Part shown: positions 2,620 through 15,582 of the stretch, piece after piece | Layout of the letters: each line of letters starts with the position of its first letter | Position numbering within the stretch: position 1 is the first letter of the stretch | Origin: Hyaloraphidium curvatum SAG 235-1 | Taxonomy: Eukaryota > Fungi > Monoblepharomycota | Assembly (NCBI GenBank): GCA_025558095.1 | Contig: JAIVFI010000003.1 | Coordinates: forward strand, 620,001 to 684,000 | Direction of reading: 5' to 3' | DNA: 64,000 bases | Made by a program: the position numbers and the translations under genes | Notes under the pieces: generated by a model | Told to the model about the DNA's origin: nothing | Database searches by the model: none | Seen by the model: only the letters and a program-made list of their open reading frames with translations

Positions 2620-3824
2620 TCAGTTGTTGAACTTGACGCTGTACGATCCTGTTGCGGGATCCTGGACCATTTGGAAGTTGTCTGTAGACAGACCAAACCG
2701 TCCCAAGATACTGTTTCCGAGCTCCTTCAGCTTGCCTGCGCAACTGTCAGTTCGGTCTCACGAAGCGGGCGCGTAACTCACCGATCATTTCGTCCTTTTC
2801 GTTATCAGCCTTGGCTCTGATGCGGGCAGGCAAAGTCAACACCGCGTTTCTAGCCTCTTTGTTCAGCGGCTCCAACGCCACCAGCTTCTTGTAGTCTGTC
2901 CAACGTCTCGTCAGCTTGAGCCACGAGGCACCATGGGGAAGTTGCCCACCTTCCAAAGCTTCTGACAGCGCGGTAGAGGTATCCAGTTTCTCGTTCGCGA
3001 ATGCACGCCTTTGCAGCGCTTTGACGTAATCCGGCTTCTCTTCAAGAGCTGGGAAGGCAATCAGAGGCGTCAACAATCGAAACGCAAATCACCCACCTCT
3101 CGAGCAATTCAAGACGGCCTTCTGCCAGTCAGACAACTTGACATAGCATGCTGCTTTGTTCGAGAAGTAAATCGCCCGCTCCTCCTTGAACGTGTCTGGG
3201 CAGACCCGCAAGGCCTCGTCGTAGGAGTGAATCGCTTCCTGGAACAGTCCCCGCCCAAAGAGGTCGTTGCCCTCCCCCTTGAACGAACGAGACTCCTCGA
3301 GTAGACGCTTGATCGATCTTCAGTCCTGCTGTCCCGACGCGGCCGAAGCACGTGCCCACCTCCATCTCCGCCGGGCTGACAATGCTCTCGATCGTCTCGT
3401 CCTCCTCTTCACCAGCACCACCAACACCCGCATCCGATGCCTCATCGTCCTCAGATTCGACGATTCGGACGGAACCCTCCGCGTCCGACTCTTCTGCCGG
3501 GGCTTTGGCCCGAGCAGGCGCAGGCGGGGCCTTCGGAACCTCTGGTCGGTCCAGACGCGTCGCGATCATGTCCGGGGGCGTGCTCCGGCCTCCAGGATTG
3601 ACATCGTCAAAGATCTTGGCGAAAGTCTCCTCGACGCCGCTGGGAAACGTCGTTGGCGGCAGGTGGTCGAACTTCCGGTAAAACGCGTTGCGGTCAAAGC
3701 CGACCCCCGGAACAGGCCCCGGACGCGGCGGAACGTCGACGTTTTCGTGTTCGTCCGCCGAATAGAACTCTTCTTCTCCGTCATCGGACGTCGCAGGGTC
3801 GTCCGGACGGGAGTCGAGTGCCAT
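2620..3824 (-). CDS. TTC1: Tetratricopeptide repeat protein 1 (TTC1-like; spliced)
   Basis: Acidic N-terminus; TPRs [33 protein letters not shown] and [17 protein letters not shown]; characteristic C-terminus [36 protein letters not shown]. Confidence 0.9.
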
Positions 3825-3932
3825 TGTTGTCCGGCGTGATCGAACTGCGCTCGCGCGAGCCCGCGTTCCGGACCGAAATGGACCAGCCTCCATGCAGATC
3901 GGCACCACATTCAATTTATGTACACCAGAAGA

Positions 3933-4547
3933 TCATCGGCTGTAGCTCCAGGAGTTCTTCAGGTCTGGCGTCCCGGGCCACGTTAGCATGCCGACGCCTC
4001 CGAACAAGCGACGCAACCCACATCCGTCCTTCGTCGCCAACCGGTCCAAGCTGTCGTTCGACTCGCCCTGAGCCCGCACGAAACCCGAGAACGCGTACGT
4101 GGTGAAGGTGCCAGTCAGCCGGCCCGTCGCGTCCACGTCGCCGACGTTGATCTGGACCGAGGCGTGGTCCTTCGCGGGAATGAGCCGACCAGTGGCGGAG
4201 CTGCAGCAAAGGAACAAGGAAGGCCATTAAGTCCCTGTCCAGAACACACCGACCCGGTCCCCCGGTAACCCAAGTGGAGACCGATCCAGTGAAAAGGTTC
4301 CGCAGGCTGCGCAAGTTCCCTGGCCACTCAAGGCGACACAGCCGACCTCTGCCCACACGAAAAGCTCCATCGTCTCGCTCCAACAGACCCGAGTCCCGGT
4401 CAGAGGAGGCAGAGGATCCTGCGTGCCAATGCCATTGCCCCAAGCTCAACCGCCCGCCGAGCCTAGCACGCCCGCCCGAGTGCCTCGTGATACTCACCAT
4501 TTCCGGGGGATGTACAGGTCAACAATCTGGCCCTTGTCGTTCTCCAT
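3933..4547 (-). CDS. RPS21: 40S ribosomal protein S21 (eS21; spliced, 297-nt first intron 4201-4497)
   Basis: [16 protein letters not shown]|[24 protein letters not shown]...[21 protein letters not shown]|LKNSWSYSR. Confidence 0.97.
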
Positions 4548-4886
4548 CGTTGGTAAGATGCTGCTGGGAGGTTCTCCGTTAGCCCTGGTCCGTTCCCGAA
4601 GTCCCCAGAGTCAGCCTCTGCCCCGTTCCACCGCCCAAGGCGGCGTCGCGGAGCTCCAGCGGCAGAAGACCGCAGAGACTGGCCTCCGTGTTGGCTCGGA
4701 GCCCAGTCGGCCGCAGATGCGACAAGTCCTCGAGGCGACCAGAGAGCACCCTTCCAGCTCGGCGGACCGCCGCGGCCACTGCCAATCGCGGGCCGCCAAA
4801 GGCATCACGTCCACCTCGATGCTCAAGACCAAGCCTACGATACGCACTGAGAAAGGACGCCGGAGGAGTGTGGAGTGGCCGGAGAC

Positions 4887-4925
4887 TTTCCGAAACACTG
4901 CTTGTTGACCGCAAGGTTTCGGAAA
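4887..4925. repeat. Perfect 10-bp inverted repeat (hairpin) near the left end of the transposon
   Basis: TTTCCGAAAC (4887-4896) and GTTTCGGAAA (4916-4925), with an inner CTTG/CAAG pairing. Confidence 0.7.
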
Positions 4926-5093
4926 AGGGCTTACCTAATGTCCGCAGGACCATCCCTCGTTTCACACACAGGTCCCGCTACTCGAGCTTGCCGGAGTCGC
5001 CGCGTGCGAATTTGCAACCGCTAGAGCACAGTCTCCATCGCAAAAGGCGCGTGGTGCCTCCTGCGTCGCATCGGGGAACGGCACGGCCGAAAC

Positions 5094-6110
5094 ATGCTTC
5101 TGAGCGGGCCAGAAACCGCGGTTCGGCTCAAGCAGACCGGCAAGCTTGGCCCGGACGAGATTGCTGCTGTACTCGCAATTCACCGAACGACGTATTTCCG
5201 TTGGATCCGCCGATGTGGGGCTCAGACCGTTCCGGACCATCCCCGCAAGGCCTTCCGCAAGGTGTCCGAGGAAATGGTCCGGCACGTAGTTGACGAGGCC
5301 AAAGCTCGCGTCCGCGTGACGCAAAGGGAGCTCGCTGCTGACCTGGCGGAAAAGTTTGGCGTTTTGGTGTCGCAGCAGCATATCTCGCGGCTGCTGAAGG
5401 CCAACAGGGTCACGAGGAAGAAGCTCACCATTAAGAGCGCCGAAGCCCTGAAACAACCCGAGCGGCACCGCATGTTCCACGAGAGGGTCACTTCCTTTGA
5501 TTTGGGGCGCCTAGGTGCCTTGGACGAGTCCTCATTCCAACTCAACGATCCGGGGCGCTTCGGCTACTCGGAGAAGGGGACTCCCGCCGTCGTATACCTG
5601 CCAGGGAACCGGGGCCCCAAGGTGACCCTTTGCCTCGCCATCTCACCCACTCCGCGACCCGGTAATCACACTGGAAACGTGATCTCGTACCAGATCTACA
5701 GCGGCAACATGAACACCGAGAGGTTCTGTGCTTTTCTCAAGACTATTCGCGCCGGGGCTTGTGGGTCCGAGTCCCTGGGCGTTATCCTGGACAATGCGGG
5801 TTTCCACGGCTCTCCTCTGCGGGCAAGGAAGACCACGGACGGCACGGCAATAATAAAGAACCTCTCGGGCAAGTCGTTCCTTGCGGTCCAGGCCGTAGCA
5901 AAGGCCAACAATCTGAGCCTCATCTACCTGCGACCGAGATCGCCGGAATTTAACCCGACCGAGTACGTGTTTGCCACGATCAAGAACCTCGTGAGGCGGG
6001 ACTGCCCCAGGACGGTGCCGGATCTCGTCCGGTCCATCGAGAGGGCCATTCAAATCGTCGGCCACGGCGATCTGATGGCGACGTTCCGGCACTGCTTGAA
6101 GCTAAGCGAG
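5094..6110 (+). CDS. IS630/Tc1-mariner family DDE transposase domain (HTH + DDE_3)
   Basis: HTH (EIAAVLAIHRTTYFRWIRR), second HTH (TQRELAADLAEKFGVLVSQQHISRLLK..TRKK), catalytic LDESSF (D at 5523), VILDNAGFH (D at 5790), and YLRPRSPEFNPTEYVFATIK (E at 5961). Confidence 0.95.
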
Positions 6111-9100
6111 GCTGAGTTTGTGCGCATCGCGGAATCCGCGTCCGCCGGCAAATGTGTGGCGCGGAAGGTCACACTACAAGGTCAGATCTCTGCCTTTGCT
6201 TCTCCGGCTCCTCAGACGTGCCCTTCCGCGATGGAGGGCGCAGCAGCGACCCAGACCGAAGCAAACGCGGCCGAGCGGCTCGCTGAAGAGGTGGACTGCC
6301 ATGACGGTTGCGCATCGGGCATGCAGACCGCGCTGACTCACGACAACGCCCACTCCGAGCAGGCTCGCAACCTCGGCGTCGCCCACATCAACCCGCACCA
6401 AAAGCACACTTTGCTGACCCTGAGGGAAGTTCTCCACGTCGATGGTTCGGCGAGGGAATTCTTTGGGCCGTGGAACGACTTCACGGACTCCGCTCAAAGG
6501 ACCGCGGGCTTCGACGCTGCGGACGTCCTCGGGGGCCTCTCCAACCTCGGTGAAGCTCCTTTTGAGTTCATCTGTCAGCGGGTGGCATCGGGTCGGGGGT
6601 ACAAGCTGGAGCGCGAGCTTTTCGTCGCGCGCCTCCGGAACATCGTCGCCCGGCGGTGCCGGGTCGCCCCCAGTCTGATCGGACCAGACGCACCGGCACC
6701 CCCCTTTTTCCGCCCCGCGGACGATGGCGCGGATCTGGGACCGCCGTCAGCCCCCGACGTCTCCATCTCCCAGCTGGATAACCTCGCCCGCTATGCCGAC
6801 GTCCCACCGGAACTTAACGTCTCGTTCAAGAAAGCCAGCCGCGCCGCGTTGAAACAGCTGTTTCCGCTCTCAGCCCTTGCAAACGACACCGTGCTGGACG
6901 AGAGGTTCGCCATCCTCCTATCGGGCCTTGTACGAAACGGTCGTGGACCAGAATGGCTACGTGCGCTCGCTGTTTCTCTCTGGGGACAGCTCGGCCCGGC
7001 CGGGAGGGCACGCATGGACAGCTTCGAAACATCCGAGACAGCACGTCGTGCTCTGCATTATGTTCACCAGCCCATTTCGAAGGTCTGTCGGTTGGAGTAC
7101 CTCGAACGCGCGGCTTCGACCGAGTCTCTGCCAAGGAACCTTAGGCAGATACTGGAGGAAGCGTGCCGCACGCTGAAGGACCAGCAGGGCCGCTCGCTTT
7201 TTGATGCGTCGCCCGGCCTGGAGTACTTCCTTGCTTCGCTCTCCCTCCCGCAGCGATGCAAGATAGTCATGGCGGCGCGTTTGCCGGATAGTGTGGCGAG
7301 TCGCAATGCGGAAGGGTGCAAGAGATTCTTCGATTGGGCGGTGTGGAACCCGATGGCGGCCAACGAGGAGGCCCTCGCCATCGAGAATCCGGGTTCCGTT
7401 CCCGTGCTGGTGTGCAATCTCCTGTCGAGCAGCCCCGCAATCCCAAACTGATTTTTGCCCCGGCAGCTGCTTTCGTTCCCGGGCCTTTTCCAGATGAGCC
7501 CGGGCGTACCTGGACTGGATGCAGAGGGCGATAAGCTGCTGGCAACCCTGTTCCTGAAGGCGGAGCAGCTCGGGTGGGAACACTCTTCCATGGTGACGCT
7601 GCGGCTGCTGGAGTCGGGGCCCAAGATGCGCGATTTTACCCTGGACTTGTGCGGTATGCCCGCGCTGGTGCGCGGTAGCAACCCCGAAGCACGGCAGGAG
7701 GCCGCGCGCACCGCGCTCGACGCCAAGCTCCACTTCCTCGCGGAATCCGTTGGACTGCTGGACTTCGGCCGTATCCAGAAGCGGGATTGTCCGCTCTGTT
7801 CCTTCAGTGTGCAGGTGGAAGGCGAAGTCCCGGCGAAGGCTGGGCGGCGGCGCAAGGTCGCGGCGTCGGGGATGGTGGCTGACGGAGCTGCGCGGGAGCG
7901 TGTCTATGACGCCGAGCTTCGGCTCCTCCACCACGTCAAGGGTGCGCACCTCACCTGCAGAGCGTGCCCGGGGAAGGGACATCAGTTCGACCTCGAGAGT
8001 GAGTTCCGGCAGCATGTCGAGGAGAACCACCGTGGGGCGTGAGTTGCACCGCGCTTTCCATGCATGCCTGGGACCGATGCGAAGCTGACCGCCGCCGCGG
8101 ACAGTTTGGTCGCCCCAAGGAATCTCACCACGTCGTTCGGCCAGTTCATTGCCAACGCACACTACATTGTCCCGTTCGCGTCGACAAACCTCAAAGCCAA
8201 CATTCCTACGGGCCTCGGCGGCTCGTCCTGCCCTTTCTGTTTCGCCGGTGGCGGGAGGCACCGGCAGGAGTGCTCTCCGAAGCGGCGGTGGGTCGCGCTC
8301 AACGGCTTCCTCGCACTTGGCGACCCCCAGCACGAGCGATACAAGACGATGACGGAGCTGGCCGTCGAGTGGTTCCCGGCGGCCGAGGTGTGCCACCCAT
8401 GGGCGCGGGGCCCGTACGAGCAAGTCGGGCCCCTCATCACCAAGGCCTGCACCCTCGCCGCCATCTTATTCAAGATCATCTGGACCAAGATCTTGTTGCA
8501 GATCCACAACAAAGAGCTCCCGGACCAAGACGGATCCGTCACGCAGGACATGCTCGCCAGCTTTCCCCCGTCTTACGTCGCAAAGATTGCCATCCACGCC
8601 GTGCTTGGTGCCGGCCAGATGTCCGCCGCTGTTGGAACCCGCCGCGCGGGAAAGCAGAAGTCGGCCGGGCTCGGTGCTGGGGCGAGATACTCGGGCCATT
8701 CGGGGGCGCCAGGAGTGGAGCAGCTTGTGGACGGCGGTCCGGACCTCGGAGCCAACGACGACGATCGAGACGAGGTGCTCGAGGACGTTGACTTCGAGGA
8801 CGATGACGACGCGATGGCCGAGGACCAGACCGGCGCCAAGATCTTGGCCGACTTCTTGCACGGCGAGCTGGATCAGATTGAGGACGAGGACTTGGTTACG
8901 GCTGAGGACACCCCCGATCTCTCGCAGGTTGCTGATCAGGGCGCACCGTCCGTTCTCACCGTCGCGGAGCACAACGCAGCGGCAAAGCTTGTCCGCAAGG
9001 CGGCCGTTGCTGCGTTTGCAGAGGCGCGGGAACTTGTGGGCGAGACGTACGACAAGCTCAGGCCGCTTTTCGTGCAGGGACCTTTGCTCCGCTATGCCGA

Positions 9101-12100
9101 GCAGGTCGCTTTCAACCGAGCTCGAAGCGTGCCGCAGCGGCTGCTGACTGCGCTCAAGGTTCTCATCCGTCGCTTCCTACGCGGGGAGGTGAACGCGGGC
9201 GTCGGCCGGAGGCGGATTGGCCCAATCCTCAGCTACGCTCTGGCAAAGCTCGGATATGGGGACGACGACTTCTCCAATTTCCCGTTCGAAAGCGCATTTG
9301 GCTGTGGTCTCGCCGAGGCCACGGAGCTCAGGGTCGGGCTGGGGAGGCTCCTCCGGCCGTTCAGAGGCTTGCAGCTGAACCGGATCGTTGACCTCCGGGA
9401 TTCAAAACAGAAGCCGCCGGTGCCGGCAACCGTTTCGCAGCGGAGGGTTATCGCTCGGGTCCTGCAGGACAAGCAGGCGGGCAACCCCGTGGCGGCCGCG
9501 GTGCGAACCGTGAACCTGCCGAAGGGCAAGCCGCGCGGAAAGGTCGACGCGGAAACGGAGGCGGTGCGCAGCTACCTCCAGAACATTTGGGAGACGCTGC
9601 CGCGGGCCTCACCTGCGGAGAAGGCTGACTTGCGAAAGGTGGAGCTGCAGGAGCTGAGGGACTGGGTGGTTGCAAACCGTCTACAGCTTCGGAGCATCCC
9701 CTTCCGCTACCCGGCCGTGACCACGGCAACGATTCGGTCGACAGAGCAGAAACCCAAGTTCTGGGTCCCCGAGCACGCCGAGGACATGAACGAGGCGGCG
9801 GCGGCGGCATTGGTGGGGCAGAACCGGCCCCACTGGGAAAGCGAGAAGCTTCTGGTGGCGCGGATGAGCGAGTATGACCTCGACAAGTGTCGTTCATCCA
9901 CGAACCCCGCGGACGAAGCCTTCGGCTTCCAGATGTGCTTCATCGCCCTGCACGAGCTCGAAAAGCAGGACGAGGCGCTGAAGAAGAGGGCCGCGTCCGC
10001 GGCTGCTGCACTGCCGAAACCTGGAACGGCGCGGAGGACGAGCACCGCCAGGGACCCCGATTCAACCCCAACTTTCCCAACCATTTCAACTGCTCCGGTC
10101 AAGGACAGGGAGGCTTCGAACAAGACCAGGAGGGCCCGCAACACGTGGCGGCCGCACCGCGTCGAGAAGCGGCATTACAGCAAGAATGGCTCCCCGAAGC
10201 GATGGCACGGGTTCGTCGTGAGCTTCCGTAAGCGCCGACCGCAGCCGGGGCCCGAGGGACTCGCCAAGAAGGAGACCATGGAGACGAAGCGGCGGGAGCG
10301 CAAGGCGGCCGCCGCCGCCGCGATGGCGGGGCTTGGCGCCGCCCAGACCGGCAAGGAAAAGGCAGCCTCGTGGGCGCGGCGGAAGCTTCGGGCTGCGGTC
10401 GCCGAAATCAGCTTGTCCCCCGTGACCGTCTACATCTCGGCCTCGGATCTGCCCGAGTTTTTGTCCAAGCTGGGCGTGGAGGTCGCGCCTGGCATCGACA
10501 CCTCGCGCGTTGACTCGGACTACCTATTCGGCCACCTGCTCAACGGCGGCAACCAACTCGTCAACGAGGACCGGCTCTTCCGCCTCCGTCAGCAGGGCAA
10601 AGTCTCGGCCAGGGGCCATGCCGCCGCCACGCAGCCCATCTATCGTCGCACCGCGGACGTTCTGAGGTACTCCGGCGTCCGGGGCATCTATCATTGCGGC
10701 AGCACCCTGGGCATTCTTAACGAAGAAGTCTCCTTCGTGGAAAAGGTCTCGTTCCAGCAGTCGCAGCAGCAGGAGCGGCAAAACACGACACAGGACGTCG
10801 AGCCGCCAAAGCGCGCAGCGCATTCGCCAGCAGCCGCGCCGGCTCCTCCTGTTCAAACTCGGCCCACCGTCTCCGTTCCCGCCGCAGCTCATGTGCCCGC
10901 CGGTCTTGCTGCTTTCGAAGTGGATGTTTCGTTCCCTCGCGATGTTCCGATGGATCCCTACCCGCCGCTCTACACCGGTCCATGGCTGCCAAACGGCGAT
11001 CCGGACCCGCCGTGCGACATGGCTGTCTTCGATGGTGGGCATTTTGCTCAGTGACGCACGGGTTCGGAGGCTGATCGGATCCTCACTTTTCCAGGCCAGA
11101 ATCGGATTTGGCATGGGGGCATGGTCTACTACCTGCAGGCGACGGCCCAAGGGGACGAATCGGTCCCGATGGATTGGGAGCCCTCTTATTGTGCCAGCAG
11201 CAACCTTAACTTCACCACCATGCCTTCCGAGCCTCCGGCGGACTGCGGCATCCCCGCCGCGGTCCCGCCGGAACCCCCGCCCTTTAACTCCTTCGTCGAA
11301 CCACCAGCCTCGACTTCTCTCCCTGCCTCCATTCCCCCGGAACCGCCCCCGCATTGGGTGCACGACCCGTGCTCGTGCTGTCAAGATGCCGCCTGCAAGG
11401 CCGTGGACTGTGCGCCCAACGTGTTCGCGCCCCTGAGCTCGGGGCACAACGACCCTCCCTGCGCGACTGTCTCGCCCGGTGACTCGGTGCCCGAGACTTC
11501 TGTGCATCCATGCGCGGCCCTTCCTTTCCCCGACTTCTCGCCGCCACTTCCTTCCCCCTTCCTTTCTTGCTTCCCTCCCGAAGTCGTCGTTTGCGCGGTC
11601 GAACCGTCGCCGCCGACGGTAACGGTCGAGGGCAAGTTCGCTGCCCCCGTACCTCCTCAGCTGGCCCCGACCCCGGTTCCGCTCCCGCCGCGTTCTGCCG
11701 AGCCGTTGCCGCGGCCCCCGGTCGACTTCAAGACTGGCATTCCCGTCTACTACCTCAGCCGCCCTGACCATGTGTCCGTGCTGGCACCCAATCTCCTGCA
11801 CATGCCGACGCAGGCGGAAATGTTCGAGCGGGCCGAGCGCGGCGAGCCAGTGGAGGGCGGGGTCGTCGACGTGGATCCGAATCGCTGGTTTCTGGCTGTT
11901 GCCAACCGCCGCGTCGACGTGCGGCTCGTTGCCAAGAGCCTGAACCCCGGGCCGAACGGACGCTACGACTTCGCCAACAGTCATCTGCCGGGGACAACGG
12001 AGCGCATCACCGTGACCAATGCCGACGGCACCAAGTCGCACTACGTGCCGAAGCGGGCGAACCCGTCCAAGGCCGACGGTTCCGTCAGCTTCGGGAGGAT

Positions 12101-13466
12101 CGTCGGCTTCCACCTAGAGCACTCCTGCTCCGATACTAAGCGGATCGCAAGGTCTTTCGGTCCGTCGCCGCCTGCCGCTGGAGCGTGCAGACACCACCCG
12201 CTCTGGGAGCCCAAGATCTCGGAGTTCAAGCCGCCGGCGCCCGATTCGCGCCCCAACGACGCTGCAAAGGCGGAGAAGCACGCTCGGCGCAACGTCGAAC
12301 TGTTCCCGACCCCTGGCGGCTGCACGGACGAGTTTGGTGCCAAGCTGTGGGGCGAGGTCGCTGGTGCCGGCCGTGCGGGGACCCCGGCGCTGCCGGAGCT
12401 CATCCTCGGTGTTCCGGCCAAGCTCGACCGCCGCCTGTGCGGCTACGACAAGGCGGCCGCGCGTCTGAATGCCACCAAGCGGACCACCATGCTGGACGTC
12501 AACGATTGCGAGGGCAACCCTGTGCAGAAGTCTCTCCACGATTTCGAGCGCGACCTGCCCTCTCAACGCACAACGAACAGTGCAGCCTTCTCGGACTACA
12601 CGAGGGCGCTGCTGCCACAACTCGACCGCATCCTGGACGTCTACTGTTCCGGAGAACGGAGGTGGGCAAGCCAATCCCTGTGGCAACGACTTCGCTCACG
12701 CATCCTGCAGCCTGGATCGTGTGCGCACGATTCGCCGGCGCCGCGAGGTCCTCAGCTGGATCTGTCGCGACATGTGTCGCAACCCGTATTCGGGCAAGTA
12801 CGATCCACAGACGACCATCGCATACGGCGCCGCGCGATTCGGCCATGCGAGCAAGGGCGGCCCGGCCTCCCGGATCGTTCGCTTCAGGGCGGAGCTGGCC
12901 AAGGCCGGGATCATGGTCTTGGTCAACGAGTACCTCACGTCCCAAATGTGCAGCTGGTGCGGCAGCCGCCGTGATCATCCGACTCGCCTGACGTCCTTTC
13001 CAGCTGCAAGACCACCTATGTCGTCGGAATCCGGAACCCCGGCTCCAAGGGCGAGGTGCGCGGGGTGAAATACTGTCCCCTCTGCCGCCGCTTCTGGATG
13101 CGCGACGTGAACAGTGTGCACTCCATGGAGCACCTCTTCTGGTTCGGCCTCATCACCGGAGGGGAGCGCCCCTGGCCGTTCAGGCCGGACACCAGGAAGC
13201 CGAAGCCGCAGCCCAAGCTCCGAGCTGGGACTGGTGCAGCGCCGCGCAAGTCCGCGGGTGAGCGCGCTCGCATTCGCGACGGTCATCCCGAGCGTCATCC
13301 CGAGCTGATCCGGGAGCTCCAGGTGCCGCCACAGGCCGCAAGCGTACGGCCGCAAGCGCCGCGAATGGGTCGGTCAAGAAGCTCAAGCCGGCAAGCTGAC
13401 CTGGCCGCGGAAACAGTTACAAGTTGGCGTGCCATGCACCGCGTGGGCGCCATTGCATTTGCTTGA
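5094..13466 (+). CDS. Predicted spliced transposase-Fanzor fusion, ~2,697 aa; exons 5094-7409, 7467-8038, 8105-11034, 11095-12661, 12711-12956, 13004-13466
   Basis: Five GT..AG introns of 57, 66, 60, 49 and 47 nt, each with a CTGAY/CTCAC-type branch site. Each one removes the in-frame stop or frame change between consecutive ORFs (5094..7451, 7455..8042, 8064..11054, 11121..12974, 12469..13068, 13056..13466). Confidence 0.72.
11860..13190 (+). CDS. Fanzor (TnpB-family) RuvC nuclease and zinc-finger region, split by two introns
   Basis: RuvC-I VVDVDPNR (D at 11874); LPSQRTTNSAAFSDYTRALLPQLDRILDVY; TTIAYGAARF; RuvC-II LVNEYLTSQMCSCC (E at 12928); zinc finger ..VRGVKYCPLC; RuvC-III FWMRDVNS (D at 13104); C-terminal RPWPFR motif typical of Fanzor1. 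Confidence 0.92.
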
Positions 13467-13505
13467 TCGAGGTGGAGTCCGTCAGGGACCGCCTTTTATT
13501 CGCAG

Positions 13506-13578
13506 GCTCGATGATGAACATTGCTGCTAGGCCGCAAAGGATTGCGGCACAGGGGGCACAGTAGCAGTTTCTGAGAGT
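13506..13578 (+). ncRNA. Structured RNA candidate with box C/D motifs (omegaRNA scaffold or snoRNA)
   Basis: ATGATGA (13511-13517) and CTGA (13571-13574), closed by a GCTC/GAGT stem. Internal 9-bp stem 13520-13528/13560-13568 and a perfect 7-bp hairpin GCCGCAA-AGGA-TTGCGGC (13531-13548). Confidence 0.5.
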
Positions 13579-13600
13579 GTAGCTACCAACTTCCGCGTCA

Positions 13601-15582
13601 ATGGTAGCACTCCAGAGAGCGTTCCTGCCACTTCCACTGATGCATCGCACGCTATCTCACCCAGTCGAACGCGGAGGAGGGGTCGGTGGCGGACGAGGAG
13701 GAATGGAACGACTGGGAGCTGCCCCCGGAGCACGAGTTCCGGTTCGAGGTGGACTTTGGCGCGACCGTGTCCCTAAAGGTCGGTTTGGGCCCATTCTGGA
13801 AATCATGTGATCTGTGGAGCGGGGCGGAATGGCGACATGAGCGACCCCAGCCTCACGGAGCTCGTGGACTGTGGTGTGGGGCCGATCGTCCTGCACGGCG
13901 CCCCCAGGGAGGCCTTCGAGGACTTCAGGAACATCAATTCTTACTTGTGCTCTCTAATCTCTGTCTTCTCCTTGCAGCTCCGTTCCGGGAACGCCGAGAT
14001 TTTCGGGACCGAGATACCCGTGGACCGCGAGCTCGAGTTCTCGGGCCGCAAGCTGGCGGTCTTTACGTACCACGGATGCGTGCTTGCCGTCAAGGGCAAG
14101 CCCTCGGTGGAATATGTTGCCGACGAGACCCCGATGTCGAGCTACTTCAACACCCACCTGGCGCTGCAGCAGATCCGCGAGGCCGCTGCCGGGTCCGAGG
14201 GCCCGCGGGCAAGTCTGCGCCTTTCATGGCTTGTCACAGAGACTGACACTTAAGCCTGTCAGGTTATGGTGGTCGGCCCGTCAGACGTCGGCAAGAGCAC
14301 ATTGGCCCGCATCCTGCTCAACTATGCAGTGCGCAACGAGCAGGTGCCGTTGTTTGTCGATCTTGACACCAACGAGGTTCGATGTTCTGCTGCTTGATCG
14401 CCTTGTAGCTTACACCTTCTGTGAGCAGGGCTCCGTTTCGGTACCCGGCTGCCTTTCCGCGACCCCAATCACCCGGGTCATCGATCCCGAGGAGGACTTC
14501 TCCGCGTCCGCGGCAACCACTTCGCTTGCCCCCCTGGTGTTTTACTACGGGCAGACGACGCCGCTCGACAAGCCGAAGCTGTTCTCCCAGCAGATGACCG
14601 CCCTTGCTGACATCGTGCAAAAGAAGCTGGATGTCGACGCGGAAGGTTGGAAGCATTGGACTTTGGTGTGCCTGCCCGTGCTTGACGGATGTTCCTCTAC
14701 TCGCAGTGCGCACTGCAGGGCTGATAATCAACACGCCTAGCGAGTTTGCGGAAGCCTCGGGCAAGGACCTGCTCGCGCTCGCCATCAAGGAGTTCAAAGG
14801 TCGGTCCGATCGTCAATTTGGGAAGGGCCAGTGGTCGCTGATTACCATATGTGCTTAGTGAACGTCCTTTTGGTGATTGGCAACGAGCGCCTGCACAGCG
14901 AGCTTTCGCGCAAGTACAAGAAGGGCGTCTCCGTCGTCAAGCTGGCAAAGTCGGGCGGGGTGAGACATGCCAGTCCTGTTTCCCGTAAGGATTGCTCATT
15001 CGGCCGCCATGCTCAGGTTGTTTCGCGCGACAAGAACTTCCGAAAGCAGCTGCAGAACCGTTCTGTTCGAGAGTACTTCTACGGAACGGCCAAAGCCGAA
15101 CTGCTCCCCTACAGCACCAGCCTACCGTTTGTGGACACCGTCATCCGACGAATAGGGAATGGCGAGTGCGGACGATGGGCGCCAGTCCCTCGCTGACGTG
15201 CTTTTCCCGCCAGCCCCTTCGTACCTCTCGCTCGCAATGGAGCGCGAAAAGTACGAGTCTAGGATGATCAAGGTCGATCCCAGCGACATCCTGCTCAGCT
15301 TTGTCCTTGCCGTGTCGTCGGTCGATGCGCCGAGCACTGAGAAGCAAGGTGCGACCGCGGTGGACGAGGACGCCGAGAGCAAGCTACTCATTGAAGGACC
15401 TGTCATGGGCTTTGTCTACATGTGAGGATGCTGCGTTCAATCCCGTCTCTGTCCTGCTGCTGAAACCGCGCCGCAGATCCGAGGTAGTGACGAACCAATC
15501 TAGAATGAACGTTTTGATACCCTCGCCGGGCCGCTTGCCGCGGAAGTACATGATAATGGGCACCCTGACCTGGCGCGAATAG
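13601..15582 (+). CDS. CLP1: Polyribonucleotide 5'-hydroxyl kinase / mRNA cleavage factor Clp1 (spliced; first exon is the ATG alone)
   Basis: ATG|intron 13604-13664|[59 protein letters not shown]; Walker [14 protein letters not shown]; GLIINTP; VVKLAKSGG; REYFYG; PSPGRLP. Confidence 0.96.

Follow-up and report, generated by a model that had tools for sequence, protein, structure and literature searches.

This study focused on a transposon in a 64,000-nt stretch of the freshwater fungus Hyaloraphidium curvatum SAG 235-1 (contig JAIVFI010000003.1, 620,001-684,000, forward strand), here called the window, in which positions are counted unless another locus is named. The 8,629-bp element (4957-13585) is filled by one gene, predicted to encode in a single chain an IS630/Tc1/mariner-type (ITm) transposase and a greatly enlarged Fanzor. 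Ten copies, 99.6-99.9% identical, were found in the genome, and it is a recently active cut-and-paste DNA transposon that has spread to ten sites. Taken as an ordinary ITm element it lacks the TA duplication, and taken as an ordinary Fanzor element it lacks the target-adjacent motif (TAM) next to the insertion; a motif in the host DNA stands instead at a fixed distance, 22 bp before the left end. Both halves are enzymes of known kinds, and what is new is the architecture and the targeting rule, RNA guidance lying outside the claim. No natural single chain of a transposase with TnpB or Fanzor was found in the full text of PMC and bioRxiv (Repbase and subscription journals were outside the search), nor was an ITm element that combines loss of the TA rule with a distant motif at a fixed offset. 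Such aimed insertion was found described there solely for bacterial Tn7 and CRISPR-associated transposons (CAST) and for engineered fusions.

An earlier note, made from the sequence of the window, had proposed that six open reading frames (ORFs) join into one frame of about 2,697 aa when five introns are removed, and this was confirmed. The spliced ORF (5094-13466, + strand) comprises 8,094 nt, specifying 2,697 aa and a stop, and has no internal stops; each intron is bounded by GT..AG and carries a branch-like motif. Contigs of run X2, presumed from its record to be RNA and behaving as spliced RNA, skip exactly 57, 66, 60, 49, and 47 nt at the five introns, at depths of 3,200-4,700; DNA run X1 gave no intron joints, though all 30 bins were covered. 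The gene is spliced and abundant in the RNA-like run, as one frame, and none of the five junctions on whose splicing the proposal depended was left unspliced. The read-contig comparison was aimed at these junctions and covered the gene 3′ of 7279, while mRNA continuity across the transposase-linker part (5094-7279) rests on the DNA frame and on conservation. In the following list, as below, the ten copies are termed family A, and related families are lettered B to G.

5094-7409, + strand: exon 1, helix-turn-helix (HTH) and DDE transposase (aa 1-345), then, without a stop, an unassigned helical region (aa 346-772)
7410-7466, + strand: intron 1 (57 nt), skipped in the RNA contigs, position the same in family B
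7467-8038, + strand: exon 2, two C2H2-type zinc-finger-like motifs (aa 880-961), a candidate DNA anchor
8039-8104, + strand: intron 2 (66 nt), skipped in the RNA contigs, position also in family B
8105-11034, + strand: exon 3, made up of helical and acidic stretches, sharing about 35% identity with family B
11035-11094, + strand: intron 3 (60 nt), skipped in the RNA contigs, position also in family B
11095-12661, + strand: exon 4, proline-rich linker, putative RuvC-I D2200-P-N at 11874, and a family-specific insert of about 200 aa
12662-12710, + strand: intron 4 (49 nt), skipped in the RNA contigs, same position in families B, F, and G
12711-12956, + strand: exon 5, RuvC-II E2535 (12928) six residues ahead of the first CxxC, 83% identical in family B
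12957-13003, + strand: intron 5 (47 nt), skipped in the RNA contigs, position also in family B
13004-13466, + strand: exon 6, second CxxC, RuvC-III D2578 (13104), basic tail, and stop

Within exon 1, a pyrimidine tract and CAG (6213-6215) precede an internal ATG at 6231 (M380) in the stretch 6185-6233, and could serve as acceptor for a transposase-less isoform.

The transposase was readily recognised, with HTH_32 at the N-terminus and Pfam DDE_3 at 55.8 bits (cut-off 28.6; E 6e-15). The acidic residues singled out earlier at 5523, 5790, and 5961 are D144, D233, and E290 of the spliced frame, and are kept across the transposase clade, which was recovered in the tree as one clade with support of 100/98. 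An HTH, a DDE triad, and terminal inverted repeats (TIRs) are all as expected of an ITm element, and a TA target site duplication (TSD) is not found. At the other end of the chain, the residues E2535-x6-C2542, C2545, C2568, C2571, then R-D2578 follow the order of a Fanzor-type RuvC, with a C4 zinc finger, the RD of RuvC-III, and the alternative RuvC-II glutamate that in Fanzors lies six residues ahead of the zinc finger (PMC10711439). RuvC-I was assigned by motif to D2200-P-N, which resembles D383/N385 of SpuFz1 and is kept in families A, B, F, and G and in a distant metagenomic relative (L047). It lies 335 aa upstream of RuvC-II, farther than the published spacing for the DPG at RuvC-I of Fanzors, which PMC10711439 gives as 120-160 aa and PMC3627910 as 125-275 aa; in total length, Fanzors run to about 800 aa (PMC10711439).

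Pfam, Atlas, and fold searches were run exon by exon, and the joined frame was computed in scripts only. The TnpB match expected of the C-terminal part was obtained in a relative but fell short in this copy: Cas12f1-like_TNB (PF07282) exceeds the cut-off in family G of the same genome (32.2 vs 26.3 bits) and is weak here (E 8e-4, below cut-off). The language-model (Atlas) neighbours of the nuclease part were PF07282 clusters from eukaryotes and giant viruses (score 0.95-0.96); searched against the PDB, the RuvC part matched TnpB-family entries only weakly. The zinc-finger-like Cys/His pattern at aa 880-961 is kept in family B, its Pfam match not being significant. By motif resemblance, exon 3 (about aa 1020-1845) probably holds a REC/WED lobe with large insertions; Pfam, Atlas, and AlphaFold gave nothing usable to confirm it, and the AlphaFold models of exon 3 and of the family G tail were of low confidence (pLDDT 39 and 43), with uninformative fold searches. 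As judged by these motifs, no catalytic residue has been lost from the DDE triad or from the RuvC triad of the Fanzor, with nuclease activity a prediction, and the Fanzor is presumably a Fanzor1, given its size, introns, and DDE association.

Comparison with sister families supports the view that the fusion is conserved under purifying selection. Family B (five copies, 8,663 bp) shows about 40% aa identity to family A, with transposases 63-65% identical, and its single frame runs from transposase to RuvC-III through seven introns predicted from sequence, five of them at the family A positions; an eighth, 3′ intron is uncertain. Since this frame is open in a sister family, the fusion in family A is not a one-off lost stop. 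Synonymous differences between the two families are near saturation (proportion pS 0.60-0.73), and in each of the 11 regions the nonsynonymous proportion (pN) falls below pS, with the smallest values in the transposase (0.23) and in RuvC-II/Zn/III (0.17, 75% identity); the least constrained region is aa 346-440 (28% identity, pN 0.52). Differences among the ten family A copies are too few for showing selection. The claim that no stop separates the transposase from the downstream part held in all ten copies and in family B, so that one-off decay is not the explanation, and the alternative offered with it, a transposase that has merely lost its stop ahead of a Fanzor starting at 6231, does not account for a junction that has stayed open across families A, B, and C.

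More distant relatives repeat the plan with variations. Families F and G are each represented by a single, frameshifted element of about 9 kb, and family C measures 18.1 kb; in all three the transposase is related and the tail is of Fanzor type, but the middle differs. In families D and E and one more remnant RuvC-III-like matches lie 16-23 kb downstream. A set of OTU-like protease motifs lies between transposase and Fanzor tail in family G (L044:2310-6425, minus strand; weak Pfam match, E 0.03); it is degenerate in family F (L045) and was not seen in families A or B. Homology searches with exon 4 and the family G tail gave no matches, a profile found two fragments, and viral, phage, and JGI metagenome scans returned no relatives. 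Two 6-kb contigs from ENA metagenomes repeat this order on one strand, opening with DDE and closing with TNB, with small gaps that could be introns, and in L046 introns and the zinc-finger exon are present, with an ambiguous transposase junction.

The boundaries of the element, and the motif upstream of it, are as follows.

4925-4934, + strand: target (anchor) motif, part of the host DNA, its end 22 bp short of the element, consensus approximately AAGGGRYTTC
4955-4956, + strand: left copy of the 2-bp TSD (CC), 2 bp also being the length of the duplication in nine of ten copies, which were scored as six different dinucleotides
4957-4982, + strand: left end, imperfect 26-bp TIR starting TC (TA in the other single-nucleotide polymorphism (SNP) subfamily), boundaries from ten copies
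13560-13585, + strand: right TIR ending TA, from copy boundaries and TIR comparison
13586-13587, + strand: right copy of the 2-bp TSD (CC)

The TIRs match at 17 of 26 positions in family A and similarly in family B. At the left terminus six copies have TC and four have TA, and because this difference follows internal SNP subfamilies it is inherited and part of the element. Outside the termini, the 2-bp TSDs (CC, AT, TG, AG, AC, GC, CG, and repeats of these; p ~4e-10) never include TA, which sits inside the element ends; 2-bp duplications other than TA were also found in all three intact family B copies and in family C (AA). As a TA duplication is the hallmark of IS630/Mariner elements (PMC13565253, PMC3627910), the TA rule is broken here and the 2-bp stagger kept. 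TA itself was considered as the TSD and rejected, because the duplicated bases vary and TA is inherited with the element. Three copies bear lesions (C35, nonsense at aa 2265; C15, frameshift at 8242; C7b, 171-bp deletion). Independent small indels cluster 14-36 bp inside the left end of family A or at the junction, in four of four TA-ended and one of six TC-ended copies (Fisher p 0.024). The rest of the 8.6 kb has just two indels, and the clustering suggests repeated breaks just inside the left end. Such left-end indels occur at 4970-4992 in the window and at equivalent places in L017-L020 (family A) and in L021, L024, and L025 (family B), +31 to +39.

The motif was evident in the left flanks of the ten family A copies without realignment, at -32 to -23 (96 bits; the highest of 5,000 controls reached 61), with T at -25 in every copy, and in leave-one-out scoring the best match fell at the motif offset in six of the eight in-register copies. 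Upstream of all five family B copies there is a different, GCGTCGATCA-like word, 19 bp before the element in the three with intact junctions (log-likelihood ratio 62 vs a control maximum of 48.5), and in one family C copy, which has an AA duplication, the distance to an A-type motif is 26 bp. Orientation relative to the motif is always the same, so that distance and orientation from a recognised site are fixed, as in CAST. Neither motif is clearly enriched genome-wide: AAGGGRYTKC occurs 423 times (525-657 expected), AAGGGRYTTYCC 23 times (control 20), and GCGTCGATCA 244 times (Markov expectation 157-211). An apparent 13-fold enrichment of the family B motif (244 vs 18) was an artefact of a reversed control, and the idea that the motifs are an abundant host promoter word was rejected, as they are not over-represented in the genome. 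The sites do lie close to genes, nine of the ten family A copies having a same-strand ATG at most 50 bp downstream, mostly 12-50 bp (44% expected each, p ~0.004), with recognisable genes at several, such as an OSCP-like gene identified by eye. A similarity of the family A motif to the start of the 5.8S rRNA gene (L055:1501-1654, minus strand; score 11.6, family B motif 7.1) was noticed post hoc and is probably chance.

The right end of the element was examined for a guide RNA, and two features are relevant.

13419-13497, + strand: candidate core of an omegaRNA scaffold, a conserved linker with a stem on either side and then a T run, overlapping the ORF end
13498-13559, + strand: stretch specific to family A, with a copy of the target motif (13534-13547) in a hairpin, absent from family B

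The two-stem core is common to families A and B and L047, the last also having the second stem, and its fold z is -2.3 in family A and -2.6 in family B, making it a fair omegaRNA candidate by sequence comparison; Rfam gave no match for the right-end structure, and no stand-alone scaffold copies were found in the genome. The internal motif copy (position weight matrix score 13.0) is the second best of 128,000 window positions, and the target consensus differs from it at two positions in most sites. A guide complementary to the targets was sought, yielding no cis guide in family B, an imperfect candidate in family A, and no flank-derived match; a guide encoded in trans is conceivable. The cis guide in family B was rejected because the motif of that family has no match in its 3′ end or elsewhere in the element, and a guide from another copy's right flank because right flanks matched the targets of other copies less often than expected (7 vs 10.4). 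Box C-like (13511) and box D-like (13571) sequences with a short terminal pairing (13511-13574) were also noticed, a pair of which 0.56 are expected per window by chance, which is absent from family B, and which has no Rfam match.

The reading favoured here, with a probability of roughly 0.55, is that a C-terminal module of the same protein anchors the transposase to the motif by protein-DNA contact, by analogy with Tn7/TnsD. A displaced site, a fixed orientation, and a free TSD are what a tethered transposase produces, and the tether would most simply be the fused C-terminal part; the different motifs of families A and B argue for specificity borne by the element, and the negative guide searches place protein-DNA anchoring above RNA guidance. 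The module that binds the motif would be either the C2H2 fingers or the Fanzor REC/WED, the latter reading it as it would a long TAM; once bound, the module would hold the transpososome in place for insertion by the DDE domain at a distance of about 20 bp. Tethering would have replaced TA recognition, the old TA becoming part of the element ends. More speculatively, we infer that the intact RuvC, using an omegaRNA read out of the right end, would cut donor sites once the element has left, whereupon repair would copy the element back; after excision of the mariner type the duplicated bases would enclose the element's TA, which could serve as TAM, and the upstream motif would tell donor sites from the element's own right end. 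In Tn7, insertion is likewise displaced from the recognised site and fixed in orientation (PMC11406308), and the engineered dCas9-Hsmar1 gives one-sided insertion 18-22 bp from its binding site (PMC6735945).

Several observations weigh against anchoring by the fused module. The motif-binding domains are candidates only, the structure models being unusable. Two of ten family A and two of five family B copies are out of register, three of them with junction deletions and one (C5) unexplained. No TAM consensus was found at -1 to -5 or in the right flanks of the copies, and as the insertion points lack a common adjoining TAM, there is no clear sign of canonical Fanzor homing. Lastly, family C has the motif of family A and yet a middle without detectable similarity, whereas the closer family B uses another, a pattern that fits a host factor or an RNA guide equally.

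A host DNA-binding factor might tether the element at promoters, as the yeast retrotransposons Ty3 and Tf1 are tethered to host factors there. The Fanzor would then be a homing nuclease or a passenger, and the motif copy within the family A right end would restore the host gene promoter. The start codons just downstream of nine of ten copies, the recognisable genes, and the motif common to families A and C would fit, but neither motif is clearly enriched in the genome, and open chromatin with survival bias can explain promoter-proximal sites, leaving this explanation unlikely. RNA guidance proper, in which a Fanzor ribonucleoprotein with a fixed guide would find TAM and seed and deliver the transposase, as a CAST-like system in one chain, seems quite unlikely. 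It draws on the gap between motif and TSD (20 nt in family A, 17 nt in family B), which is of R-loop-like length, SpuFz1 cutting 16-21 nt from its TAM (PMC10432273), on the position of the best in-element match to the family A motif in the 3′ non-coding region, sense strand (roughly p 0.003), and on the ease with which a guide would change motif between close families. The results of the guide search tell against it, namely the family B element without a match to its own motif, the two departures of the family A consensus from the internal copy, the right flanks below expectation, and the lack of stand-alone scaffolds. RuvC is also intact here, unlike in CAST effectors, which are typically inactive. 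One such inactive effector is reported in PMC11406308. The earlier suggestion that targeting is coupled to transposition gained support from the fixed-distance motif and the loss of TA specificity, but guidance by RNA was not supported.

It is also conceivable, though very unlikely, that the long frame is a precursor or one isoform and that the enzymes act separately, through proteolysis or a Fanzor-only product made with an acceptor at about 6215 and the ATG at 6231. The pyrimidine tract and CAG ahead of that ATG, the weak constraint on aa 346-440, the OTU-like motif in the middle of families F and G, and a family B Met within a few residues would suit this; family B, however, has no such pyrimidine tract, the linker has no stop in families A, B, or C despite saturated synonymous divergence, and tethered targeting requires a physical link. 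A Fanzor-only product is compatible with anchoring as an extra isoform. Decay or chance joining of ORFs is hardly credible: some copies are broken (C35, C15, C7b), but the RNA-supported junctions, the intron positions and open frame of family B, and purifying selection refute it.

Among known systems, the nearest are the Fanzor1-carrying Tc1/Mariner elements PGv-1, PUl-1, and SPu-1/SpuFz1 (PMC3627910, PMC10432273), in which, likewise, a single pair of TIRs encloses an ITm DDE transposase and, downstream of it, a Fanzor, with a rearranged RuvC, D-x-N at RuvC-I (D383/N385 in SpuFz1), and a structured 3′ end. Their two enzymes are separate proteins, their TSD is TA, and their TAM abuts the insertion, in contrast to one 2,697-aa chain, a free 2-bp TSD, and a motif 22 bp off. 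IS630-associated TnpB of the DDE-6 branch (PMC10691335) similarly pairs an IS630 transposase with TnpB between inverted ends, but is prokaryotic or viral, with separate genes and a separate HTH protein, and the parts of that source consulted report no fusion or displaced target. Tn7/TnsD and CAST (PMC11406308) share displaced insertion, fixed orientation, and a free-sequence TSD, but are bacterial and multi-protein (TnsABC with TniQ/Cas), with a 5-bp TSD and an unrelated transposase, as against one eukaryotic polypeptide for which no guide was found. In dCas9-Hsmar1 (PMC6735945) a mariner transposase is likewise fused to a DNA-targeting module with one-sided insertion at 18-22 bp, but it is artificial, still needs TA, and has a dead nuclease. 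Dada (PMC3706591) is also a eukaryotic DNA transposon with sequence-specific targeting, but is described as a superfamily of its own and targets multicopy small-RNA genes, and its abstract mentions no Fanzor.

Engineered Cas-transposase fusions have low efficiency (PMC11406308), and the use of a Fanzor to a DDE transposon has yet to be explained (PMC13565253). The element described here is a natural counterpart of such fusions, young, intact, and apparently expressed, with sister families that differ in motif and spacing (A 22, B 19, and C 26 bp), so that domain swaps and guide changes can directly test the targeting code. Should RNA guidance, doubtful as it is, prove true, this would be the first natural RNA-guided single-protein integrase of a eukaryote, inserting 8.6 kb about 20 bp away, and insertion could be reprogrammed by changing an RNA.

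The window copy lies between two host genes, 15 bp before the predicted ATG of CLP1, in its 5′ leader, and with rpS21 (Pfam Ribosomal_S21e; ATG at about 4547, minus strand) divergent upstream, so that the insertion is in a divergent promoter.

13601-14737, + strand: 5′ part of host CLP1 (Pfam CLP1_N, CLP1_P; start codon inferred)

Elsewhere, a family C remnant has a family A copy inserted within its left end (L004/L011, G000:C15, about 545,000-553,800), with the same motif upstream of both. The 16-23 kb relatives (G000:C23:297,200-315,400; C13:321,470-344,200; C15:359,140-378,700; C3:874,400-890,400) begin or end with a transposase of the same clade, the opposite end being a Fanzor-type tail. 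The metagenomic locus L047:700-2455 (SRR25000059) is an intron-containing Fanzor relative with a canonical TDG WED motif near its DPN, its 5′ part missing, which makes a compact and useful comparator, and freshwater metagenome runs X4 and X5 contain short, near-identical pieces of family A at low depth.

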